Positions 4,620 to 20,049 of a DNA stretch of 64,000 nt are shown here, piece by piece (the stretch's first letter is position 1; each line of letters begins with the position of its first letter). The notes below the pieces were generated by a model. It did no database searches. It worked only from the letters and a program-made list of their open reading frames with translations, and was not told where the DNA came from. The stretch covers positions 1 to 64,000 of the forward strand of contig MCFE01000132.1 of NCBI GenBank assembly GCA_002104905.1, read 5' to 3'. A program made the translations under genes and the position numbers. Source of the DNA: Basidiobolus meristosporus CBS 931.73. Its lineage: Eukaryota; Fungi; Basidiobolomycota.

Positions 4620-7080
4620 GTTGTCTATGCATTCTACGATGCACTACATATGTTGCTCATTGACCTATATACTGCTGAGACTCACTAATCATATCATCTA
4701 AGTAATACATCATCACTTCACCACTGTGTCTACACACTGATCACTCCGATTTATTCACTATCAGCACTACCTTGTAAGCATTGATATCAGCATACAGCTT
4801 GTGCTGAACTTTGTATTATTAAGCTCACATATTGTTTTGTGAAATAGTTCTCCATGGCTCTAGTTGTGGGGTAGAATTGCTAATGATCCAGTAATAAATA
4901 AAGGTTGACCAGGAAAGTGTTGTAAAAACTTCTAATTCCACCTAAATATTCACTCAACTTAGTCACTTGGATTATTGCCTACCAATCTTAGAGAATACTA
5001 ACCAAATTCCTTGTCAGGATTTACTTGGAATATTCTCACCAAAACATCCGGTACCCAGTGCATGAAAATTCCCATAGTTGTCCAAACAGCCCCAAACTTC
5101 TCTCACATATTCTTGGGACCTTCCTAAGCATATTTTAGGTGCTTGTTATGCCAGGATCATGTAAAAGTATCAATATTACTTTAACATTCAATAAATCATT
5201 AGGTGCAAAACCACAAAATCCACTTTTTCTCCCATTCACTTCCAATATCTCCAAGGCACTTACAATAGAATTCTCCGGAGTTGATATATCATATCTATGA
5301 ATCTTTGTCTCAGGTCATACCAAGTGCAATAGATAGTCTATCATCAGTGGTTGCAGCATTTCCATATTCAAGCTTTTCTGGCTCATTATCTCTCATTCCT
5401 AAGCACAATTCAGATGAATGCCTTTACTTTTTGCTGTAGCTACAGGAGAGATTGTTGCATCCTTAAACATGTCTTGAGTGTTCTAAGAGTCTTGAAGATA
5501 TTGGAAGTAATTGGGTATTTGTGTAGATTATGTGGCTTTCACTTAATGATTGATTGCATGTGAAAGTAGTGTTTATAATTTACATGGACTTGGCAGGACA
5601 AACATTTGTAAAATGGTTAGGAAGATCCCAAGAGTATGTATGCAGAGTTTGGTACTGGTTGGACAACCTATCAAAATCTTATGCTCTGGGTACCTGATGC
5701 TATGATCAAAATATTCTGCTTAGATCCTGTCAATATGCTTGGCTCATATTCTCTAAGATTTGTAGGCAATGATCCAAGTGACCCAGTTGTCATGAGATAC
5801 TCAGATGTAATCCCAAAGCTTACAACACTTAGTAGCTTGATATAGTGGCTATTGTTGCTTGTTAAGGCATTTTTTTCCTTCTTATTTGTTTGTGGATATC
5901 TCAATTACTTGTCCATGAGTCTTCTATATGGATAATTAAAGTCCAGATCTTCAGTTCTGGACTGTAGGTCTGACACAAGGCCCTGAAGCTTGTCTCTCAG
6001 GCTATACCAGAGGGTACCTATCACATCCTCATCAGTAGTTTGCACTCTCACTGATTCCATCTTATTAGTGAGTCAGGTCATTCTGGTTATTAGATTTTAC
6101 AGTTCTCCTCCTGGGGGGATTCTATTGCTATAGAATTTTTTTCCAAGATGCATCTTCCTAACAGCTGAATACAGCTGATAAGTGTTTTCTAATGCCTTCC
6201 AGCAGAGTGTGTGTGTCAACTGTGGACTATTAATGCTTGGGGCACCTGATGTTTTGGGAAAATATCTAAATGATATCCCTAAAACATCAAGGAGAATTAT
6301 CTAAAGCTTGTAGACAATGATCAAGTGACCAAGTTAGGTGAATATTTATGGTGTCATTACAAGACTTACAACACATATTGCATATTCTATCAGCAGTGCT
6401 TGATGACTGGTAAGTTAGAATACTGGTACAGGTTCAGTCAGTAACAATAAAGACAAGTATAGTTTTACCATGTTTTGACAGTCCAGGTTTACTTCAGTAT
6501 ACCAGAATCATAGACATATGCCGTCAGTGACCTATCACTTAATCCACTATTAGGATGCAACAATATCCCCTAATATCATATTGGCTGAGTATCAATACTG
6601 ACCTCTTTGTATGCCTACCGCCAATATTGCTGCTGGTATTAACATCTTGTATTGTGCTTAAGTGTATTTATAGTTGACATGGAGTTCACAAATGAAGTGT
6701 CATGAAATTGTGGCACAATTCACAACAGGGAAAAGGATATGAAATATGGTTTTGTAACTTTACTAGAGATTTTGGACACTTGTTTCCAATTTGAATGTCT
6801 TCTCTGTGTGGTCAAGGTAATTACATTCCATTGCTACATGAAAATAATTGTCATATGGTGCAGTCACCCAAATGTAAATTGTGGCCCATAGCAACAATCA
6901 AATGAGGGGATAAACAGAGCAACTCATATTACAATTTCTCAGTCAAGATCTTGAGTTGTACACACAGGAATGGTACTTTTCACGTAGCTTTTCATTCATA
7001 GTCACCAGGAAAAGAGGACTCATAGATATGGCTTTAGTGTTCCAAGAACCATGATTATGGGATTCCTTGTATTAACATGA
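4620..7080. mobile_element. Island of decayed copia-family (LTR-A related) debris
   Basis: CpG-poor. Contains an LTR-A-like copy at 4919-5266, an opposite-orientation LTR-A-like copy at about 5480-5830, a gag fragment at about 5930-6200 similar to 29340-29630, and an LTR end TTACAACA near 6373. Confidence 0.75.
4919..5266 (+). repeat. Degenerate LTR of the copia-A family
   Basis: Starts TGTTGTAAAAAC...CCACCTAAATATTCAC and aligns by eye to the reverse complement of the LTRs at 24328 and 29910. Confidence 0.75.
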
Positions 7081-7114: not shown

Positions 7115-8352
7115 TTAACGAACAATCACGCTCATCATGATATTCAATACTACGGAGATTGCATCACAAGTAATGTTTACCCCAGCACCTGAATACAACC
7201 CACGCCAATTCCAAGCCAAAGCCCCTTTGGTGTTCTTGCACTTGGTTCTCTCTTGAGGGTGAAGTGCTGATTCTTCCGTCAGGATGCTCTTCCAGCAATC
7301 GATCACTCCCGTGTAAGGGACTTGGCGTGTTTGAACTACAGTATCAAAACGCCTCCCAGGGATCTGGCATCGAAGACGCTTACAAATGGTGTCCAGAGGG
7401 AAAGTAAGCACTGTCTGAAGGATTGAGAAACCTAGCGTCACCCACCCATCCAGAATAGGCGACTCGTTGGGATCGATATGAAGCACTCGCTTCCTCACAA
7501 AGTCACTGACTTGTCGGAGAAACGAGAAACCGGCATAGTAAATGGCAGTAGGAAGTGTGCTAGGTGACCAAAATAGCGATCCAAGCCCCTCTTCAGCAAC
7601 TACAGTACGCAGAAGATGAACAAGCCCTCGGTATTTGCGATGCTTCTTATTGGAGGCTTGGGCAACCAATCTTCATTCCACATTCGTTAGCATGATCAAG
7701 TCAGCAATAGAGGTATGATACCTACCTAGTTTGAGCAATCTCTATTGGACTGAGAAGCGCCCCTACTATGAAACTGGTTGTAACCCCAATGGCCATACCA
7801 CCCAGGCTCTGACAATCGCCAACTGCATCTTGGTCCAAGCCAAAGGCGGCGTTTAGCTTACGGTCCAAACTCCAATTAAGGTAACAGCAAGACGTACTGA
7901 ACAGCAAGGTTGTCAACTGTCCTACAAAAAGAATCAGATCACTTAGCCTCCAGGTTGAAGGCAGTAAGGCAAGCCTCACCTTTCCAAAGAGATTGCCATC
8001 CTTCCGTCTCCTGTTGAATCAATGCCTTAAGAATCCCCAAAGGGCCGGTGTACAACGGTGGAAGCTGAAAACTCGATTTGATGGGATGATTTCCGGGTGT
8101 TTTCGCCTCTCCTACATCGCTGCCCTTTACTCCAACTCCACCCACCTCATTCTCTTTGGGTAGATACTGTATTTGAAGCAGAGTTGCACCGACCGCGAAG
8201 GGCTGTATTGCAACTACTCCAGCAGCCGCGCCGAATATCCCCGGAAGGAAGCACCACCAACAACATTCGTCGGTCAACAGGGTGGTGGGGACCTCACAAC
8301 TATCAGACTGGTCCATATTTGATTGGCACGTCATGGGGGGAGGAGTCTTCAT
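7115..8352 (-). CDS. UGO1: UGO1-like mitochondrial outer-membrane fusion protein (degenerate mitochondrial carrier fold), 3 exons
   Basis: Exons about 8352-7980, 7921-7725 and 7670-7115 with GT-AG introns. Motifs QPFAVGATLLQIQ, EGWQSLWKG, SPIEIAQTRL, EEGLGSLF, FPLDTICKRL, WRGLYSG match the carrier-repeat pattern seen in fungal Ugo1. Confidence 0.65.
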
Positions 8353-8725
8353 TATATTTCAAAATTGAGTTTATTGCGGAAATTCGCGGTTGCTAAATCT
8401 ATATGTACCAGTCACCAAGCGTGTAACCAAGCTCCAGTCATATCTAATGACTACCACGGATATAGCTGGCTAAATGAACTTTTAAATACCTAGACACGCG
8501 CCACACCAACCTTTTGATGAAACAGTATTCACATGACTGAAGGTAAGCGGGATGATGAGTTCGTTGGATAGTATTGGAATTGTTTATTACAAGCAAAATA
8601 TAGAAGCCATGGGGGGGGGGTGAAGAGTGGTTAGAAGAGAGGAAAATTACAGGAGAAATTGCCCTTCGATGTAGGATATAATTGGCGCCAAGAGAGTTTC
8701 GATATTAGGTGCTATGAGTGGATTT

Positions 8726-11700
8726 CTAGTTACGTCTCTTGCCAGCCTTGGATCCCTTGAGGCTAAGCTTACCCCTGGACTTGAGGGCAGTAGGGTTCAA
8801 GGGAACATAGGCGTAAGGATCAAGGCGTCCCTTCTTGACATCACCACCAGCCTTCTTGGCCTTGTATTCTTTACCGACGATTTGACCGTCCTTGCCTCTG
8901 CGCTTTTTACCTTGAGCTTGAGGACGGGCTGGCGTATCATCATCTTCCTCTGGGAAGTCGTCCTCGTTACCTCTACGCTTGTTGCTGAACTTGATTCTGT
9001 TACCAACACGAGTGTAGCCCTCCTTGGAAGTCATGGCCTCGAGATAGTTGCTCTCAGCCTCGCGCAAGGCCTTCTGTTCTGCAGTAAGCTCGACAGGCTC
9101 CTCTTCGGAGTCGTCCGAGGACTCGTCAATCATTAGACGACCATCATCGGTAGCCTTGAAGTTGGCACCGACCGACTTGAGCTGCTGAGTTCTCTTGCTA
9201 GGCTTGGTAGATGTGACCTGAGAGACAGCACGTCTGTCCAAGAAATCAAGTGGGCCCTCATGGTCCTCCTTGATCCAAGCCTGGGCTTGTCCCTTCTTCT
9301 TGGGCTTCACTTCACGATCAACATCCATTTGGTCCTCGTCGGAATCATCGATTTCACTGTCACTTCCGTACAAGACATTCTCGTAGGCGCTACTGAAGCT
9401 GGCCTTCTTCTGGGTGGCGTCCTCCATCTCCTCATCCACGTCGCTGCCGGCGGCCTGACTCTTCTTTCTCTTGGCGCGCTCCTTTCTCTTCTTGATGTTG
9501 ATCACCAGCTTCTTGTGCTCCTCGGGGACGAACTGGGCGATGTCCTCGTAGCCGAATTTCCGGATCAACCGCTCGAAGATGTGGCGAACCTTGGCCTTGA
9601 AGTGGTTCTTGTGCTCGTGGGACCAGGTGAGGATGCCAATGACGATGTCGGAGAGATGAGGCCTCAAGAAGTCCGGTTCGAGGGTGAGCACGGAGACCTT
9701 GACGAAGCCAAGGGCGGATTTGACGATCTCTCGGTTGGTGGAGATCACGAACATCCGGATGGTCTTCAGGAGATCATCGACGATGGTCTGGGACACCTTG
9801 GACTTGAACTCGAACAGCAATCTGGAGAGGGAGGTGATGGTGGCCGAGATCATGTGGGGAGTGGATCCGGCAAGACCGGCGGTGACCATGGTGAAGTACT
9901 CGCTGATGGTGGCCTGAGCATTGTTGGCCACCACACCTCCCTCTTCCATACGGCTGCCCATAACCACGAGAAGGTCATAGGCGAGATTGCGCGAGCGCTC
10001 GTTGACCTCCTTCGTGCAGACGATTGCTTCCGAGAGGATGGAGGGGATCAGGTGAAGATCGTTGGATGGGAGGATGCTGACAACGTTGGCGAGTGCCTTG
10101 AGGCGCTCCTTCTTGGCGGATGGGGTGGTGGTAAGGGTGGCGTCCAGCACCTTGGTCTGAAGCTCCTCGATGTTGCGACGCAGATTTTCCTTTCCGCTCT
10201 CGCACTCACACATAGTGTTGATGACCTTGTAGGCCTTCTTCTGCAAAATCCCGTCCTCCTCTTGCCCAATCAAGGCAATGACTGTCTGGAACAGGCCGGC
10301 CAAGCTCTCGGGGTCGAGGTACACGATCATAGCGATGGCAAGATCCAGCATGGTGTGAGCCATAGGAGGAGCGCTGGTGGGGTCCTGGCTGGCGGTGGGA
10401 GTGTGGTTCTTCAGGGCATCCGCCAACAGATGGTGAACCTTCTTGAAGGTGGCGTTCACATCACTCTCCCCAGTGATCTTCAGAAACAGACGAATCGTCT
10501 CCAACAGGTATCCACGATACTCGGGGAGGGTCTGGCTGAAGATGTTGAAGAAGATGGCCAAGAAGTTGGTGGTGAACTGGGCCAAGTGCTGAACGTTCGC
10601 CGCGGCGTCCTTTTTCTCCAGCAGGTACTGCTTCTTGAGCTTCTCGTCCTCGATCTCCGATTGGCTGAACTCGAGATTCTTTTGGATCAGCAATTGCAAC
10701 GAGGTGCAGATCACTGGTCTCAGTCCGGGCTCGCTGTAGATGTTATTGCCCAAGAGCTCGGCGAAGTCCCTGTCGAATGCGGTGGGAAGATCGGTGGGAA
10801 GGTGGCAGAAGCCGGGCAACATACCCCAGATCTGTTGAACCAACGCCTCGTAGATCTTGGCCTCGATGGCTCTACCTTTGTTGTTGAACTTCAGAACGAC
10901 CCCCTGCAGACGCTCGCTAAGGGGAACAAGTTCCTTGACGAAATATTGGAGCTCGGTGTTGATGATGTTGTCCTTGAGGATGGGAAGCAGCCAGGCGCGG
11001 CCGATCTGCTTGGCGTCCGACGATGGGTTCTCCAGATTCAAAGGAAGAAGGTTCAAGAAGGTTTGTGGACCGATGGCGGCGATGATGGCCCCCAAGGTCT
11101 CATCGATCTCTTGCTTGAGCTCCATCCCGTCAGCGGATCTCATGTCAGCAATCAGCTCGATGGCACGGTTGAGAAGAGGAGTAGAGGCGCGCCCGAGCTT
11201 CTTGAACAAAGCGCTATAGATGCTCAGGATTCCTGGCCAAGCAGCTCTGTACCGGATGCTCAGCCCAGACTCCAACAACGATGCGATCTTCTTCAGGGGA
11301 GACTTGTTGCTCTCACCCGCCGACTCGATCAACTTCTCGGTGACGCAATTCTGGATGAAGCCGGACAGACACTCGGTGGCCGCATTGATGATCTGCTTCT
11401 GGTCGCATTCCAAGTCGGGGAAGATCAGTGCGAAGATCAGTCCAATTTGACGGGCGCACTTCTCTGCGTTACATTGGGCGTAGGCCTTGTAGCCGCTGTT
11501 CATGATCTTGAGCCAGGAGGTGGAGAGATGGACGTCGTTGATATTGGGCTTCATCTCCATGAGTGTTCTCAGCAAATCCTCGGTTCTTTCTTCACCAAAG
11601 TCCTCGCTGCTGTGTTGGAACAGATTTTCGAAGACTTCGAAGACCGCCACTGTCAAATAGCTGTTGTTGAATTTGGGCAGTTGTAGCAGGATCTCACAGA

Positions 11701-12425
11701 GGGGGTTAAGTTGGGCGGCAGGCCAAGCGAAGACGATGGGCTTGATGAGCGCAAGGATATGAAGAGCGGAGCTTGGGTCGGATTTGGTGCTTTCTTTCAG
11801 CACCTTGAGGCAGAAGTCGGCAGCAGGGAAGGAGGCGGGATGCTGAAGGGTGGGTGGAGGAGGATGGGCCAAGATTTCGTGAATGGATTCTTGGGCCTTT
11901 CTGCGGACCTTGGGTCTTCCATCTAAGCAAATCAACATAATGGCTTGGAAGGTCTTTTTGGCAGCAGAACCGCTCCAGGTTGCGCTGTCTTGAGCAGCGA
12001 GGAGGATTTCTAAGCAGGTGAGAGTAGAGCGGAGAGTGGGAGCAGACGAGTGGCTGGTTTCGAGAGTATTTACTAGGGTAGCCAACAATTGAGCGTATTT
12101 ACTTCTAAGGACGTTCTGAGAAAGGCTACAGATGAAAGGAATGGATCAGCACCATGCGGAAGTGGCTACATGGGACTAGCAAGACTTACTGGGGGAATAC
12201 TATACTCAGAAGATATATCACAGCTGACTTGATTTCATTCTCGCCATCGGTCTCTTGTTGCTCTTGCAGAAGAGTGAATAAGGTAGCGAAATAGGCGGTT
12301 GGGGAAGGCTCTACATTCTGCTCTCTTAGAGTTTCCTCCACCGCCAAAAGGGTCATGGCCGCACTTTTTTGGCTTCCCACAGTGGAGTTCACTTGGGTAC
12401 GAAGTTTAGAGAAAGTATTCTCCAT
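8726..12425 (-). CDS. RRP12: Ribosome biogenesis protein RRP12 (NUC173/HEAT repeats), 2 exons
   Basis: Exon 1 MENTFSKLRTQ...PSPTAYFATL, one intron (about 12188-12123), then the 1120-aa ORF with DGRPKVRR, QKKAYK, EVNERSR, TPHMISA, REIVKSALGFVK, HFKAKVRHIFERLIRKFG and a basic C-terminus ending AGGDVKKGRLDPYAYVPL. Confidence 0.93.
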
Positions 12426-13200
12426 GATGAATTATTATTTAGACAAGGAAAGAGGCAGGGATTATTAACCGGTTCAGACGTCGTCTATGGGTTGGTCGGG
12501 ACTATAGAAGAGGGTCGTTGAAGTTTACGGGTGCTCTCTCGATACAAACGTGAACCTTCTCTAATCAATATATTCTTGTTACCCTCGCTCGGGCATAATT
12601 CGAGCAAGATTGGCAAAAAAATGGGTGGAATTTTTTTATTTTTTTTTCAAGCCAAAAAAAATGCTGAGTTTTGCGCCCGTCGAAGTCGATCTTTCTCCTC
12701 CAATAGAAGCCCGAAAAACTCGGCGTAATCATCCTACTGGACGGGAGGAAATCAGAGCATTTTGGCATCAACCAGTGCGCGATCGATCTCGAGGATGTTG
12801 AAACTTCCGTACACAATGCAAGCTCGGTGGGAATAGTTTGGCTCACTGTGATTCTTCACGATTCAACTCTCAGGAGGAGCGATTTAATATAAGGTTTGAG
12901 AGGATACCTTCTGATTGAACAATGCTGCTTTATATAGCCACAGGTGGGATATAGATCAAATTTACGTAACAAGCTCCTGTTTCAATGCACTAATCAGAAA
13001 TGGATTCCTGTTCTGGAGCCCAGATATCGCACCTCCTTCCCAACATCGCTAAATTGATGTCTAGGGTTGTCAGTGAATTGGTACGAGGCCAAACATAGCT
13101 AGTCATCTAAGACCCATCTCGATACCAACTCAGGAGAAGTTGACTTGACTGCTCGAGGGTTTATAAATTCTGGAGGCTCGAGAGATCCGCTAACCAAACG

Positions 13201-14939
13201 ATGTCCCAGCTGGAGCCCACAGTCCCTTCCGCCTCCCCTGACAAAGTAAGCTTCCGGCGTTGGCCCTTCCCCCAACAATTCATCTTACATCTTTCCCGCA
13301 GCCCAGCTACCATCAAGATTTGGCAATAACGGTGACCGATAATGAGAAGCTCGACTATGTTGATCCACTGGTATGCATTCCCACACTGCACTCCCCGAAA
13401 GCCTCTGATGCTAACCACTGTCCAGACTTGGCGACGGTCCAAGAAAATGGGCATTCTGGTGATGGTTGCCCTTGTTGGGTTTCTAGGACCACTAGCAAGT
13501 GCAATCTATGTATGTACACCAGATATCGATTCCTCAAGTGTGCTTAACTAACCCTTGTTGCGACGAACAGCTGCCAGCATTGGTAGACGTCCGAGCCGCC
13601 CTTAACACCGATATCAATACAATCAATGCCTCGGTGGCTTGCTACGTACTCTTCAGCGGACTTGGGGTAAGCCTTGAGCTAGGTTCAAACCGCTGGTGAT
13701 GTGGAGGCTAACGTTTCTGTTAGCCGCTAGTTTGGGCACCTATTTCAGAGCGCCATGGCCGACGGGTCGTCTATCTACTCTCAACATTGCTCTTTTTCGT
13801 AGCCTCTATCGTTTGCGCACTCTCTAAGCATGTCACCATGTTTATCATCATGCGAATCCTTCAGAGTTCTGGTAGCTCGGCGGCCATGGTTGTGGGGGCA
13901 GGCTCGATTGCCGACTTGTTCGATATGCGGGAGCGTGGTACCGCCATGGGTAAGTGCTTGGTGGGATGCGAGCCGCGCTATAGAGCTAACCAGGCTTCAT
14001 CTAGGACTCTTCTTTATTGGCCCGTTGGTTGGCCCCATTACCGGCTCGATTATAGGTGGAGTGATTAATGAGTACTTGGGCTGGCAGTGGATTTTCTGGA
14101 CCCTGGCCATCCTCAGCGGCCTCATCCTGGTGGCGAGCTACTTCTTTCTGCCGGAGACCTATCCAGCCAAGTTGAACAATCTGATCGAAGGCCGTGGGAA
14201 ACGCCACTTCCCCAATCCGTTCAGGCCTCTGTATTTCCTGAGGCACCCCGCGGTGTTGATGATCACCCTCTACCCAGGCATCATTTTTGGTGTATTGTTC
14301 TTGCTGCTGACCTTGCTCTCGGAGACGTACGCGGAGAAGTACCTGCTCTCGTCGGCAGAGATCGGCTTTTGCTATGGGTTCGAGGGCGCGGGCAGTATCC
14401 TTGGGACTATCGTCGGCGGCGTGTATACTGACTATACTCTGCGTAAACGGATGAAAGCCCACGGGGGAGATCACCATCCCGAGATGAGGCTGCACTCCAT
14501 GTGGATTGGCGCGTTTTTGGTGCCTATCGGCTGCCTTACATACGGCTGGTTGCTCTATTTCGACGCCCATTTCTTGTTACCGCTGATTGGCCATTTTTTA
14601 TGTAAGTCGCCCACCATACCCCTTGTGTGCCGCAACACATACTAACCTTTGTTATCGAAAATCCCAGTCGGCTTCGGCATGAACATCATTATCACCACCT
14701 GTAATACTTACCTGGTGGATGCCTACTCGAAGTATTCCGCATCCATCACCAGCTGCGGGATCTTTGTACGCAACGTATTGGCCACCATCACGCCTCTCTT
14801 CGCCCTGACCATGAGGCAGCGTCTAGGCGACGGCTGGATGATGACCATCTGGGGAGCCATCACCGGTGTGGCGGTGGTCCTGCCTGTACTGGTCTTGTAC
14901 AGAGGTGCGATATGGAGAGGCCCGATGGAGGCCAAGTGA
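13201..14939 (+). CDS. MFS transporter, DHA1 (drug:H+ antiporter 1) type, about 7 exons
   Basis: Spliced product contains WRRSKKMGIL, PLVWAPISERHGRR (motif A), GAGSIADLFDMRERG, GPLVGPITGSIIGG, GWQWIFW, LPET, PEMRL, YLVDAY and about 12 hydrophobic helices. Confidence 0.9.
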
Positions 14940-15615
14940 AAAGTCCCGTTGTAAATTCACCCAATCCAACTATCATGAAATTTTGTTGTGCAATTCCGTC
15001 TTCATGATTTCCTTGTATAGAATAAACGCTGCATTGCATCGCTTAGAGAGTTCACTGCCTCTCGTTTGCCATGCCAAGGATCGGTTTGCTAGTGTGCAAG
15101 TGTGTCTTTCCCCAGCCATGTAAGACTAAAGGATTGGCACCCGTCTGAAACTCAGTAGATCTCGGAGAATTAAGCCTCCTGAACGCCAGTTTCATTGAAT
15201 AGCTTGTGAAGTTGTCTAAGCACACATTCGCCCTACCACACCCCAACCACCCAATTATCTCCTGTTGGCTAGTCTGCGGAGTTGACAGGTTTCTGCACGG
15301 TGTTGGGTGGATGCTCTGGACCATCCAGGGTCGTATGGTGAGACGGGGTTTTACTCGGGGCACCTAAACAACGGAGGCTCTCAATTACTCGTCACCTTCG
15401 CCACCATATGTGCTATCAAGAGTCGGTTTGGCACATCATAGATTCAGAACTGTCTCAGCAATTGCTAGATCCGATCAACAAACGCCATTCAAATTGGCAG
15501 GCGAGCGTTCAGGAGTCTTGCTCCAGCGATTGGTCGTTGGATGGCCAATTCTCCGACCCTAACCCCCGCCCAGACATCCATGCTGAAACCCGAACACTTG
15601 GCGAATTTACCGGAT

Positions 15616-17177
15616 TTATTTCCACAATTTGTAGGGGAAACCATCAGGAATCAGATGGGGCTGATCAAGTATGATACCCGCACAGAACTCCAACGCATCC
15701 ACCAGCCTTGGCCCAGGCCGATTGAACATCTGTCGAGAAGAGAGGGTGAGCGAGGGGACGGGGGAAGTTCCAAAGATGACGCGTGGATGAGGTGTACCTG
15801 GGATCCATCCACAAGGTAGATGGCTCGGGTTTGTTTCGTGGCCTGCTGCCACCAGTCGTTCTCGGCGAGCAAGTTGGTTTGCTTCTCCGTCTCGACCAAG
15901 TCCAGGCCACAGGGGGCGATGATAATGATTTCCGCCTGGGTATCCACGATCTCCTCGGGGGTGAATGGGCGGCCATATCGGGCGAATTTCTCCCCCCTGG
16001 CGTTCGTCTTGACGCAACTGTTCAACGGATGAAGTCCGCCCGCTTGGTCCTAGTGTCAGTACCCTGGGTGGGGATCGCTACTTTCGCTGACCACATACCC
16101 ATTTCTACGATTTGCGGGGTCCTTTCCATGGTGCAAACAAGATTAGCCCCGATACCAACTCATCAGAACAGGCGCAAGCATACATACCAATGCCCAGAAA
16201 CGTACACCTATCCCCAAACCAAACCGCGCTTGGTTACTCACTTGTCCAAGAAATACAGAAGAGAACTTCCACCTACCGGGTCCGGCCATTCGATGACCAA
16301 GCACCGCGGCTTGACGAAGTCCCCTCGGTCCAAGACGTGCTGTTCCACGGCCCGGATCCGGGCTGACAACTCGTCAAGCACCAACTGGGCTTCTTGCGCG
16401 AGGCCGACAGCATTTCCAATCATGGTCACCTCCTCCAGCATATCCCCCAAGCAATTGGGATTGAGGTCCAACACGACCGGGGTCTTCTCCATGGAAGCTG
16501 CTACTCTCTCCACCGACATGAAGTCAATAGCACATACCTTACACAGAGACTACGTCGAGGGGCGGAAGTGGGGATTCAGTTGACTTGTTCGTAGGTAGAC
16601 GGAATCGGGAAAAGTCCCCTCACCTGAGCCAGGATTACTTCGGGTTCGAGGGCTTTTAGCAGGTCCACGTCGAGGGTATACAAGCTTTGGCCCAAGGCCA
16701 GGGCCTCGGAGACCTGACGGTTAACGTCCGCGGGGGTCTGAAGTAGCTAGTTTAGAAGGGGTCGGGTGGAGAGCAGGCCTCTCGGGTTTACCGTGAACGT
16801 GGTCCTCTGCTTTGTCAGGCAAGGTCTGTCCGTGATACTTCTGCGAAGGGGCCGTCCGAGCCGGAGACCTGGCTTAGCGTCTCGAAAGTCCACTCACTAG
16901 CTTACACAGTGGGTGCACCTACCTGGGGTAATCGTCTGAAACCAGTTACCAACCGGAGACGGGGTGGTTCATTTATGGCTCAGAGATGCTTATGAAAAAC
17001 CCTACCTTCATGGCTTCTTCCCACTAGGAGTTCCGTGCCACCTGTTGAGGTCGAAAGTTGGGTTATAGGAATGGAAGGCTACGGCGGCGACGGTTGGAAA
17101 GTACCTGGAATGGAGCCGAGGATCTCGGTGGCGGAAGGCAGTAGGGAGATGACTCGTGTTTTGGGAGGAGACAGCAT
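15616..17177 (-). CDS. BtuF/COG0614-like (Peripla_BP_2) cobalamin/Fe-siderophore-binding protein homologue, 10 exons, 319 aa, no signal peptide
   Basis: Exons 17177-17105, 17041-17006, 16935-16923, 16840-16792, 16737-16624, 16549-16277, 16207-16188, 16121-16099, 16042-15798, 15729-15616 sum to 960 nt in frame. Protein: MLSPPKTRVISLLPSATEIL...LVGRSHEDDYP...LEPEVILAQSLCKVCAID...PRCLVIEWPDPVYVSGHWTPQIVEMAGG...IIIAPCGLDL...YLVDGSQMFNRPGPRLVDALE. Confidence 0.85.
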
Positions 17178-17802
17178 GATAGGGTTAGGATACGTGTTCT
17201 ACGAATTACACGGTAAGCGAAGAGGGAATTTTCAAGCCGGCAAAATTCCCCGCTCACCCCCCAGTCATCCACCTGGGATTCGTCTAGATGCCTGGTCTCA
17301 AGCCACTGCGTCGGAGTGATCTTTCACCCATGGTGATCCACGCAGATAAATCATCTCCCTCCGGCCTGTATATACCCAGTAATCCCCATCATTTCCCCTG
17401 TCAATCGGCGTGGAGAAAATTCTCCGATCCGCCTCGCCCAGCCAATAGCCTGAAGTTACCAGGCGGGTGGGCTTTCTTGCCTACCGCATCTCGAATGAAC
17501 TTCTCCACTTTTACCAACGAACTCCTCGAAGATCCTGACCCCCACCTGAGCAGAAGGTGCGTGGATGCTCTGAACATGTTGTGCTCGTTCCACGATGTCA
17601 ATGCGCATCCGGGTGAGGGTTGCTGTTGAGAATTCGCCAATTATGAACATCTGCGGCCAATCAGCAGTATCTATGTCGAAGAAGTGTACTGCTTTCGTAT
17701 ACTGGTTCGAGGGAATTGCATATCGTAGGCCTGACTATCAACCTGTACGATACATAGCCAATTGCCCAATTTGACATCTTGTTGAACCTGAATAAAGCCT
17801 GT

Positions 17803-17836
17803 CACACACACACACACACGCACGCACGCACACATA
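17803..17836. repeat. (CA)n microsatellite; an (ACCGTA)n repeat lies near 17928-17949
   Basis: Directly visible in the intergenic region upstream of the MBL gene. Confidence 0.85.
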
Positions 17837-17993
17837 CAAACGCACACATTCCCAGCCAACCTTTAACTATATAAAGTCCACCAGGACTGAATATTGGAAG
17901 GATCCCCACTCCATATCGTTCCATCGCAACCGTAACCGTAACCGTAACCGACTCCTCCAACGTTTCCCTAGATACTCCCACCTGCCCCTCACC

Positions 17994-18913
17994 ATGAACC
18001 AGATAACCCAACTCCCTTTCGTTCACGTCCCGGTTGGGTCCTTCCTTGTCCGGTGCGTTGACCCCGCCGGCCTACCCACTCACGACTGGATCCTGGTGGA
18101 CTCGGGCGAAGCGAGCCAGGTACCGCGCTTGCTGAAGGCCATCGATGGCCTGTTGTCCCACGAGGAGGACCGCGTCCGGTATGTTTGCCTCACCCACGGC
18201 CACCTTGACCATACCGCGGCCACCCCGGCCGTTCTGGAGAGGTTCCCGGGGTGCCAGGTGGTGTTGCACCCCGAAGAGATCCCATTCGTCTGCGAGGGAA
18301 AACCCTTCGGAAGTTGCCCGGGCGACACTTGGGCTTTCAAACTCTTGAAGAGGTTCTCCCACGAGGCCACCGTCAGGGTCCCTCGGGAGCGTGTTCTGCC
18401 TCTTAAGGATGGGGAGAGGTGGGAGTACGAGCATATCATACGGCTGGTAGAGACGCCCGGCCACACACCAGGTAATGGCGTTTCAGGCGAGTCGAGTGCA
18501 GGCGGTTCTTGTCCGGGTGCTTTGCATTGCATTGCATTGCATCGCATCGCATCGCATCGGATCATGCATCACGGCAGCATCGGGATCGAACACGTCATCA
18601 ATGATGCCGAGCTAATCCCTTCTCTCTCGTGCCAGGTTCTGCCTCGTATCTTCATGTTCCCTCACGATCGCTCTTGGTGGGTGATGCGGTGATGAACATC
18701 GTCGGGCCAATGGCCAAGCGGCCCGGTATCTCGGGGCCGATGGCCATGTCCACCTGCCATTGGGGGGATGCGATGAAGGCCATCACCAAGATCACCCAGC
18801 TCCACGAACAGGTGGACAACGTCTTCCCCGCGCACGACTACAGCCCCAAGGGCGTCCATATCTCCAAGATCCAATCGTTCCACCCCTCTGCACCGAAGTC
18901 TGGAACGAGCTGA
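17994..18913 (+). CDS. Metallo-beta-lactamase-fold hydrolase, 2 exons, about 251 aa
   Basis: Exons 17994-18471 and 18636-18913 (756 nt). All metal-ligand motifs present: LVDSG, THGHLDH, GHTPG, VGDA, PAHD. The intron contains (TTGCA)n/(TCGCA)n pentamers. Confidence 0.88.
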
Positions 18914-19220
18914 GGTAACCGTATTCATGTTCGCCCTCTGCATCACTGAAAACCTCGTCCTACGGACCGTAATAAACTGCCATCTCATCACGTGACTACC
19001 GTAGAATGAGGGGCGTCTTACAACATCGTTTATTTCTGGTTTCAACGTTCAACCGTTCAATCCCGTTCTCAGCGAGAGGGCTACGCTAGCGAGAATCGGA
19101 CCCGGTCCCAACGTCCCGGCAAGGGACCCAAGGACCTGCTGCTGTTACTAGGTCACATCCAACGATGACGGGAAACGACCAACCTACGTACCAACCTAAG
19201 TCCCGCCACCTCACCTCGAC

Positions 19221-19800
19221 CTAAAGTCCATCCGAAAGCGAGCGAGCCTGGTCCATGTTCAAGCCTTTCTGGCTGTAGTCATGCGCGGGGAAGACGGTAC
19301 CCACACGTTCCTGCAGGGCGGCCATCTTTTGGATGGCTTTCTTGGCGTCCCCCGAGTGGCAGGTGGAGATGGCGAGCGGGAGTCCGACCGTGGGGGTCTT
19401 GGCGCCGAACAGGCAGTAGGAAGTGTTGGTTATCGCGTCTCCGACCACGAGGGATCGGGACGGTACGTGGAGGAACGAGGCGGACCCTAAGTCGGCAAAA
19501 AGGTTAGGGTTGGTTGCCAAGCCGCCGGGACTTCTCGCGTGCCAACCGGGCTGGTTCAACGAACGGTTGGGTTACCTGGGGTGTGTCCGGATGATGCTTG
19601 CTACGCTGGATCCCAACTACACCGGGTTTTCAGTTCACGTATGCGGTGCTCGAACGACTCATGCATGGGAGGAACTCGTGGCACGATGGATTTTACATGC
19701 TACAGGGTCCAAGAAATGGCATGTGTCCTGGTACTCGGCGCGTCACGGGTAAACGGGGTTGCCGGCTTCCATATGTCATAGGTCCAAATTGGCTGAAAAA
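19221..19800 (-). pseudogene. Decayed second MBL-fold paralogue, tail-to-tail with the first
   Basis: Last exon 19486-19221 (GSASFLHVPSRSLVVGDA...STCHSGDAKKAI...VFPAHDYSQKG) is open and clearly similar to paralogue 1, with the same phase-1 intron after GHTP. The upstream frame (FEHRIRELKT) carries in-frame TAG stops, e.g. 19603-19601; no intact HxHxDH found. Confidence 0.7.
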
Positions 19801-20049
19801 GTCGGCGAATTTGGTGGCCTTCAGATGAGAGGAGTTTGTTGGTAGCTAATTCAGAATGATTGTCATCTGTCCAAAAGCCTGTACTCTATCTGTTGGCTCT
19901 TAAATTCGATTTGAGGGGAGGAGCAAACCAAACCATTCCTGGACCACATCAGAACGGTCAAGTGGCTGATGCAAAGAAAATCAATGGGTGCTCATCATCA
20001 ATCAACACACAAACTGACATGGTGTATGCACAACACCTTATGGCGGGAT

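Follow-up and report, generated by a model that had tools for sequence, protein, structure and literature searches.

The locus described here raises the question of why a fungus should carry, divided among ten exons, a gene for what looks like a bacterial periplasmic cobalamin-binding protein that has no export leader. The window, a stretch of 64,000 nucleotides of Basidiobolus meristosporus CBS 931.73 whose coordinates are those of contig MCFE01000132.1, contains this gene on its minus strand at 15616-17177. The locus is a real, intact and intron-rich fungal gene, and its product is, as judged from sequence, a member of a conserved, uncharacterised and leaderless clade of class III (PF01497) binding proteins. 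A cytosolic role of this leaderless family in the handling of corrinoids (vitamin B12, its precursors or analogues) appears somewhat probable from the company that its genes keep.

An intron-rich fungal gene

The gene was rebuilt from the raw sequence of 15580-17260, where coding segments of the minus strand were spliced together at GT...AG boundaries. The resulting model consists of 10 exons and 9 introns, with a coding sequence of 960 nt that runs from an ATG at 17177-17175 to a TAA at 15618-15616 and encodes a product of 319 residues. All nine introns are of the GT...AG type and 54-82 nt long; the exons measure, from 5' to 3', 73, 36, 13, 49, 114, 273, 20, 23, 245 and 114 nt, and three of them (13, 20 and 23 nt) are micro-exons. 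The parts of the gene are as follows, P0387 being a paralogue from the same genome.

15616..17177, minus strand: whole gene, from ATG to stop; own model, with the same span as the GenBank gene (L001:5249-6810)
17105..17177, minus strand: exon 1, 73 nt, encoding MLSPPKTRVISLLPSATEILGSIPG; donor GTACTT, with the intron after residue 24 in phase 1, as in paralogue P0387
17006..17041, minus strand: exon 2, 36 nt, GTELLVGRSHE; the next intron lies in phase 1 in SHED, after SHE, and is common to Umbelopsis isabellina
16923..16935, minus strand: exon 3, a 13-nt micro-exon, DDYP; required for GRSHEDDYP and also a micro-exon in the paralogue
16792..16840, minus strand: exon 4, 49 nt; own model and comparison with the paralogue's introns
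16624..16737, minus strand: exon 5, 114 nt; the next intron is in phase 0, between TQ/AQ and S/D-L-C, and is found in Spizellomyces, Umbelopsis, Rhizophagus and Chlorella too
16277..16549, minus strand: exon 6, 273 nt; carries the invariant C98-x-V-C101 and E182-W183
16188..16207, minus strand: exon 7, a 20-nt micro-exon, VYVSGHW with its last codon split; the phase-2 intron in the GHW codon is common to Spizellomyces
16099..16121, minus strand: exon 8, a 23-nt micro-exon, TPQIVEM; own model and comparison with the paralogue
15798..16042, minus strand: exon 9, 245 nt; carries the invariant C245-G246, and the phase-0 intron after DGSQ is also present in Spizellomyces and Rhizophagus
15616..15729, minus strand: exon 10, 114 nt, MFNRPGPRL...KLWK and the stop TAA; own model

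The original prediction, made from the letters alone, had described a gene of ten exons and nine GT-AG introns, a 319-residue product and an ordered set of motifs, and the reconstruction reproduces all of these. The motifs RVISLLPSATE (residues 8-18), GRSHEDDYP (32-40), QSLCKVCA (95-102), EWPDPVYVSGHWTPQIVEMAGG (182-203), APCG (243-246) and DGSQMFNRPGPRL (279-291) follow one another in that order. Because just seven residues (MLSPPKT) stand ahead of the first strand motif, RVISLLPSATE, the product has no space for a leader, as had also been proposed. Residues 6-319 align end to end with fungal proteins of about 320 residues (blastp E 1e-96 to 4e-114), and the alignments with three 319-residue Basidiobolus proteins, P0387, P0389 and P0398, contain no gap at 70-72% identity. 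As measured by these alignments, the homology of the spliced product is far beyond chance.

It had further been suspected that automated annotation might miss the gene, which proved mistaken: GenBank record MCFE01000132.1 has a gene of exactly this span, with a product of 324 residues and a weak PF01497 match, and relatives are annotated in dozens of fungal genomes. The mere presence of the gene in Basidiobolus is thus not new, since it is annotated already and is one of many orthologues under generic names; the labels on relatives include 'Fe/B12 periplasmic-binding domain-containing protein', 'helical backbone metal receptor' and 'hypothetical'. Enumeration of single-intron variants gave two solutions of 975 nt; in the plausible one, exon 9 runs 15 nt further, as far as a GC donor, and the five residues that separate the 319- and 324-residue products could stem from this extension. 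The 319-residue model is favoured because all relatives align without a gap around the junction of DGSQ and MFNRPG.

A leaderless family and its origin

Compared singly with Pfam and the PDB, the exons gave sub-threshold matches only, exon 6 reaching E 0.049 and 13.5 bits against PF01497; against a representative library, the same exon found 338 matches at E<=0.001. Full-length relatives were reached via this library search, and the Pfam comparison, structure prediction and fold search were run on the 70%-identical paralogue P0387. Homology to the BtuF-type class III binding proteins of PF01497, for which a hidden Markov model search and a structure prediction had been proposed as checks, held up in both. 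The paralogue scores 41.7 bits against a PF01497 cutoff of 27.5 bits, 127 of the 140 aligned members match PF01497, and a profile of the family matches solved PF01497 proteins at E 1e-21 to 1e-8, among them Vibrio cholerae BtuF (E 5e-17), with which it has GHW in common. The AlphaFold2 model of P0387 (predicted local distance difference test 96, predicted template modelling score 0.93) shows two alpha/beta lobes linked by a 24-residue helix (145-168). Its top structural match is Escherichia coli BtuF (1n2z; Z 23.7, root-mean-square deviation 2.7 A, 242 of 245 residues), tied with the heme binder PhuT at Z 23.6; other BtuF, heme and siderophore binders lie 1-4 Z units below the top match, and more than 30 solved class III binding proteins fall at Z 19-24. 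The predicted BtuF-like class III fold is therefore solid, while the ligand cannot be named from the fold alone.

No NCBIfam model specific to this family was found. The IsdE model matches members weakly, and fungal members gave no match to the BtuF equivalog NF002894. The cutoff of this BtuF model is 234 bits; a prokaryotic homologue (L090:4007-4924) reaches 31 bits, and the adjoining leader-bearing protein 162 bits, which is much closer though also below the cutoff. The export signal and the service to a FecCD-type ATP-binding cassette (ABC) permease that are usual for the PF01497 class are not found in this family wherever the start could be read, and FecCD/ABC genes, where they occur, come with a second, leader-bearing BtuF.

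A scan of bacterial and archaeal genomes yielded at least 598 relatives, from which 80 loci were taken for analysis. Wherever the start could be read (63 of these 80 loci, and protein P0244), the first residues are M-(R/K)-(I/V)-x-S-L-L-P-S-A-T-E, which puts strand 1 at the very start, and eukaryotic members with a readable start likewise begin at the fold. At least two operons encode a second PF01497 protein of the leader-bearing type, with an N-terminal extension of 32-51 residues ahead of the fold. Since the prokaryotic relatives with a readable start are all leaderless, the leaderless state is ancestral to the family, and the notion of a periplasmic protein domesticated by losing its signal has to be given up. 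As read from these N-termini, the family branched off from the binding-protein superfamily in prokaryotes as a cytoplasmic lineage, and the window protein, being leaderless, is presumably cytosolic.

The distribution of the family was surveyed by two database searches seeded with close relatives, each of which gave more than 6000 matches; the best 120 of each were inspected. These were mostly from non-Dikarya fungi, namely Spizellomycetales, Rhizophlyctidales, Chytridiales, Cladochytriales, Polychytriales, Synchytrium microbalum, Monoblepharidomycetes, Paraphysoderma, Umbelopsidales, Bifiguratus, Calcarisporiella, Mortierellomycotina, Glomeromycotina and Basidiobolus. Non-fungal eukaryotes among them were Chlorella, Bryopsis, Emiliania huxleyi, Corallochytrium and MMETSP protists; Spirogloea and Mucochytrium, a labyrinthulid, came in through cluster look-ups, and green algae and a haptophyte are among the non-fungal members. 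The best matches also held a few proteins of Planctomycetota, which bear the NCBI name 'cobalamin-binding protein'. Dikarya, Mucorales, land plants and animals had no protein among the best 120 of either search, which is suggestive but is no proper test of absence.

In a quick tree of 98 sequences of the family, with two true BtuF proteins as the root and support from Shimodaira-Hasegawa-like approximate likelihood ratio tests (SH-aLRT) only, the eukaryotes, 37 sequences in all, group as a single clade (SH-aLRT 97). The sister of this eukaryotic clade is a Phycisphaerales group, and the two lie inside a clade of Planctomycetota plus eukaryotes (SH-aLRT 100). Among the fungi, the Basidiobolus proteins, of which there are four, also group together (100), and holding all 25 fungal rows together was not rejected and gave a better likelihood (approximately unbiased test, p-AU 0.78). 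Intron positions agree across wide distances: the phase-0 intron before (S/D)LC is common to Basidiobolus, Spizellomyces, Umbelopsis, Rhizophagus and Chlorella, that before MFNRPG is also present in Spizellomyces and Rhizophagus, and the phase-2 intron in GHW and the phase-1 intron in SHED recur in Spizellomyces and Umbelopsis, respectively. These shared positions imply that the gene already bore introns in early fungi and was not acquired recently by Basidiobolus. The earlier argument from introns against bacterial contamination is thereby strengthened, as nine spliceosomal introns are present and several are shared across phyla. Likewise, the suggestion of an ancient bacterial origin with retention in B12-using early-diverging fungi accords with the nesting of the eukaryotes in Planctomycetota and with the shared introns.

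Two homologues, L039 and L043, from metagenome-assembled genomes (MAGs) labelled Planctomycetota and Chitinophaga pinensis, are near-identical (branch lengths 0 and 0.045); one of the two bins is probably contaminated.

Cobalamin context, conserved residues and function

Rfam scans of all 80 prokaryotic loci and of L003 found cobalamin riboswitches (RF00174, 60-113 bits) at nine of the 80, always upstream and in operon orientation. Eight of these loci are from Gammaproteobacteria (SAR86, Porticoccaceae, Pseudohongiellaceae, Halieaceae, Thalassomonas and one unclassified MAG) and one is from a Dadabacteria MAG; a tenth locus with the same operon ends before the riboswitch position, and the RF00174 scan of 65 other prokaryotic loci found none. 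The riboswitch operons carry a TonB-dependent receptor; BtuCD-type genes are present in four of them, and at least two encode a leader-bearing BtuF in addition to the leaderless protein. As a fuller example, the operon of L090 begins with the riboswitch, a TonB-dependent receptor, a PP-loop ATP pyrophosphatase (PF01902) and the leaderless protein (with a 4-nt overlap), and continues with a CobA/CobO/BtuR adenosyltransferase (PF02572), a FecCD permease, an ABC ATPase and a leader-bearing BtuF. Because such operons encode a true BtuF of their own, the leaderless protein is not the docking partner of the transporter. In six riboswitch operons, L066 (3226-3762), L068, L070, L073, L077 and L084, a DUF6580 protein of about 180 residues is encoded between the TonB-dependent receptor and the leaderless protein; this uncharacterised protein is a candidate for a part in the uptake or handling of B12. 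The Dadabacteria locus L053 has two full-length cobalamin riboswitches (17-208 and 5043-5233), one ahead of a unit of receptor and leaderless protein and one ahead of a BtuF/ABC unit.

A second, PduO-type adenosyltransferase (PF01923) is encoded directly downstream of the leaderless protein in gammaproteobacterial L066, two Thermoplasmata MAGs and one Methanobacteriota MAG, and in L059 the stop of the leaderless gene overlaps the start of the PduO-type gene. The presence of two non-homologous adenosyltransferases next to one and the same protein, in lineages far apart, hints strongly at its function. Many protist members, moreover, carry a C-terminal DUF5522 (motif CCGxGCRHCxYGH), a domain not found in the prokaryotic loci, and some add a PP-loop domain (SGGKDS). 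This domain is 30% identical to the PP-loop protein of the operons (E 6e-22 over about 200 residues, with motifs in common), so that the neighbour in bacterial operons is the fusion partner in eukaryotes. Among the fusion proteins, such as P0028 from Spirogloea muscicola and P0001, some have lost the SGGKDS motif (e.g. 'WIGDVSS'), which suggests that the PP-loop domain is degenerate there and possibly non-catalytic. In Spizellomyces punctatus, the gene divergent from the orthologue (L008:1107-2860) encodes an Aminotran_5 protein with a faint precomputed match to the B12-binding domain PF02310 only.

The residues that mark the family are E36, Q95, C98, V100, C101, E182, W183, G191, H192, W193, P195, C245, G246, R286 and R290 (window protein numbering), which do not vary in any of the four groups of the alignment (eukaryotes, Planctomycetota, riboswitch clade and other prokaryotes); the true BtuF outgroup has none of these signature residues. 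Cysteine occupies position 37 in 61 of 61 prokaryotes, and aspartate does so in 30 of 37 eukaryotes, the window gene included. Three archaeal proteins, aligned separately, keep the cysteines, H192 and W193 and have proline at position 35. In the model of the paralogue the conserved cysteine and histidine set follows predicted strands, and the loops concerned may, by analogy with BtuF, line the cleft in which class III proteins contact their ligands.

To our knowledge, animals are the only organisms in which the handling of B12 inside cells is understood in detail (CblC, CblD, MMAA and MMAB). B. meristosporus has two MetH, one methylmalonyl-CoA mutase, three adenosyltransferases, one MeaB, one CblD, five class II ribonucleotide reductases and no CblC (Orlowska et al. 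2021, Table S1, PMC8085122), so that MetH and the mutase, which it had been proposed to look for in the genome, are both there. The same authors report that many B12-using fungi are without CblC, whose task 'other proteins' may do, and the leaderless BtuF-like family is not mentioned in that paper (PMC8085122).

Comparison with proteins of known or better-studied function places the family close to, and yet apart from, several of them. With BtuF (structures 1N2Z and 1N4A from E. coli and 5YSC from V. cholerae) it has in common the two-lobe fold with one long helix, as predicted by the model, and the PF01497 motifs: strand 1 is followed by SLxPSxTE and strand 2 by S-x-x-DYP, while R-x-x-PR lies close to the C-terminus. 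The GHW of the V. cholerae protein is shared too, and in Gammaproteobacteria the family and BtuF occur together in riboswitch-controlled operons. The family differs from BtuF in its identity of 17-21%, in being about 70 residues longer, in having no signal peptide wherever the start is readable, and in the invariant Cys98, Cys101, Cys245 and His192, which BtuF is missing. The fold is equally close to PhuT, ShuT, RhuT, BhuT and IsdE (Z 21-23.6), which are tetrapyrrole binders with side-chain axial ligands and which are exported and serve ABC importers; heme-uptake genes, in contrast, were not found near leaderless family members. CblC (MMACHC) and the decyanase BtuM have folds unrelated to the leaderless family, and the likeness would be one of function, a cobalamin being held while its upper ligand is removed or its cobalt reduced before loading. 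Thiol chemistry is central to CblC and to decyanation by the cysteine-ligating BtuM.

The algal B12-uptake factor CBA1 had been named as a parallel, and it serves as an analogy only: like the present family it is eukaryotic, has a BtuF-like predicted fold and is tied to B12 use, its phyletic pattern being linked to MetH. CBA1 is about 490 residues long, with a signal peptide, a C-terminal membrane helix and an endoplasmic reticulum/membrane location; it has 'little sequence similarity' to BtuF, conserves K78, W255, W394-F395-E396 and other residues, and is widespread in land plants (Sayer et al., PMC10828217). The window family, in contrast, is leaderless, matches PF01497 by sequence and has no land plant among the best 120 matches; the 319-residue product is set apart from this published description by having neither a leader nor a hydrophobic C-terminus, and the residues conserved in CBA1 have no counterpart among the invariant positions of the family. 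Identity with CBA1, as described in PMC10828217, was rejected on account of the leader, the membrane helix and the conserved residues.

Taken together, the riboswitch operons, the adenosyltransferase neighbours and the fusions give comparative support to the original guess of a B12-handling protein. Under this reading, a corrinoid would be bound in the cleft between the lobes after the vitamin has entered the cell, and would then be held or presented for processing. The partners in prokaryotes would likely be the corrinoid adenosyltransferase and the Dph6-like PP-loop ATP pyrophosphatase, and those in eukaryotes the homologous PP-loop/DUF5522 module or the pathway that loads MetH and methylmalonyl-CoA mutase. 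Cys98, Cys101, Cys245 and His192, with Cys37 in prokaryotes and Asp37 here, probably ligate the cobalt, or else a metal or iron-sulphur centre used in processing. A more far-reaching version, which we consider rather unlikely in its entirety, would make the family a hitherto unrecognised cytoplasmic factor that processes corrinoids in bacteria, in archaea and in those eukaryotes that use B12. With its Cys3(Cys/Asp)-His site it would strip or reduce B12 in the manner of CblC and hand it to the adenosyltransferase, and the Dph6-like PP-loop ATPase (and DUF5522 in eukaryotes) would work with it by repairing or remodelling corrinoid carboxylates. If true, it would explain how fungi and algae without CblC, such as B. 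meristosporus, make B12 usable.

Several observations weigh against a corrinoid-handling role. Invariant cysteines and a histidine are classic metal ligands, and true BtuF has none of them; the predicted structure is that of the 70%-identical paralogue and not of the window protein. Of the 71 other scanned prokaryotic loci, 65 have neither a riboswitch nor a B12 gene within 4 kb, and those without B12 context include all of the Planctomycetota closest to eukaryotes. At the loci from Planctomycetota, Nitrospirota, Acidobacteriota, Rubrobacter and Syntrophobacterales there was no riboswitch, and the neighbours were lineage-specific and unrelated to B12 (secretin/type II secretion, ClpB, a haloacid dehalogenase-type hydrolase, squalene/phytoene synthase, NamZ and FxsA). 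A branch of 1.33 separates the clade of Planctomycetota plus eukaryotes from the riboswitch clade, and so a shift of function between them is possible. Finally, Mucorales and animals use B12, yet none appears among the best 120 matches of either search, and several fungi carry both a leaderless family protein and CblC; the protein is therefore neither universal for B12 use nor a simple replacement of CblC.

The conserved residues raise the possibility, which we regard as doubtful, that the family consists of cytosolic metal or iron-sulphur proteins that bind no corrinoid, the cysteines and histidine holding zinc, iron or a cluster and the B12 operons reflecting lineage-specific recruitment. 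Three invariant cysteines, a fourth that is aspartate in most eukaryotes and an invariant histidine, all in post-strand loops and missing from true BtuF, would suit such a protein, as would the B12-free context of most prokaryotic loci and the name 'helical backbone metal receptor' that some sources give to members. However, both sequence and structure group the family with the tetrapyrrole and siderophore binders of PF01497 and not with the metal-ion binders ZnuA and TroA, B12 context recurs in at least four lineages with two non-homologous adenosyltransferases, and the riboswitch clade does not differ from eukaryotes in the signature residues; a metal centre would, besides, not preclude the binding of a corrinoid. 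That the ligand is instead heme, another tetrapyrrole or a siderophore, and the protein a cytosolic heme or iron chaperone, seems improbable. PhuT, ShuT, RhuT and IsdE do tie with BtuF as the nearest structures, cysteine and histidine are common axial ligands of heme, and the weak NCBIfam matches are to IsdE, but no heme or iron genes recur beside the prokaryotic members, while B12 genes and riboswitches do, and the absence of Dikarya, plants and animals from the best 120 matches would be unexpected for a heme or iron chaperone.

It is very improbable that the gene entered Basidiobolus by a recent horizontal transfer, that it is bacterial contamination or that it is a relic in decay. The fold and family are of bacterial type, and Basidiobolus is a genus reported to have acquired bacterial genes. 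Against this stand the nine spliceosomal introns, four of them at positions common to other fungal phyla or Chlorella, the nesting of the gene in the fungal clade, the two paralogues kept in two Basidiobolus species and the fungal housekeeping genes on its flanks; a relic would not be expected to have an intact frame, all invariant residues and a rate of non-synonymous substitution (dN) far below the synonymous one. Recent transfer, contamination and pseudogene were accordingly rejected on the shared introns, the fungal nesting, the intact frame and the purifying selection.

On the favoured reading of a corrinoid-handling protein, the gene is a concrete candidate for the missing intracellular step of B12 handling in fungi, algae and many prokaryotes, and the family a good experimental target; two further uncharacterised proteins, the PP-loop ATPase with DUF5522 and DUF6580, are singled out as putative parts of the same system. 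Searches of the literature on DUF5522, DUF6580, the family name and eukaryotic BtuF homologues found nothing on this family, and the evidence for B12 from riboswitches, operons, fusions and conservation was not found described in what was searched.

Genomic setting and the paralogous segment

The gene is flanked by a gene of the metallo-beta-lactamase fold on one side and by a major facilitator superfamily (MFS) transporter and RRP12 on the other; the nearby open reading frame of 1119 residues at 8726-12085 on the minus strand is 100% identical to an RRP12/NUC173 protein of B. meristosporus CBS 931.73. The paralogue P0387 lies on MCFE01000065.1 in the same order of binding protein, MFS transporter and RRP12 paralogue, with three catalase genes inserted, and the two loci are a segmental duplication. 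Mapped onto its own locus, P0387 has nine introns at identical codon positions and phases, the three micro-exons included. The two B. meristosporus copies have different B. ranarum proteins as their partners in the tree, so that the duplication is older than the split of the two species. Between the two B. meristosporus copies dN is 0.23 with synonymous sites saturated (proportion of synonymous differences 0.82), which indicates that both are under purifying selection, and the family-invariant residues are all intact in the window copy.

The five genes at 8000-20000 (mitochondrial carrier, RRP12, MFS transporter, binding protein and metallo-beta-lactamase-fold protein) lie in an island of 48-57% GC, the flanks having 37-42%. 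The GC content of third codon positions is 0.69 in the window copy (15616-17177) against 0.41 in the paralogue (L007:10001-11525); the duplicated segments thus differ sharply in base composition. The catalase genes of the paralogous segment, three of 483 residues at L007:7451-15668, stand one upstream of the paralogue and two between it and the MFS gene, whereas no catalase gene lies alongside the window copy.

Two further observations concern the neighbourhood. A 12-kb contig, MCFE01001251.1, repeats the MFS, RRP12, mitochondrial-carrier and P450 genes, its RRP12 product being identical to that of the window; it probably represents a haplotig or a redundancy of the assembly, and it stops short of the binding-protein gene. 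An unannotated open reading frame at 19221-19559 on the minus strand codes for the C-terminal portion of a protein of the metallo-beta-lactamase fold (FLHVPSRSLVVGDA...FPAHDYS). This reading frame has a clear relationship to the end (18629-18913, plus strand) of the annotated metallo-beta-lactamase-fold gene at 17994-18913, to which it is convergent, and is probably a partial inverted duplicate or a pseudogene.

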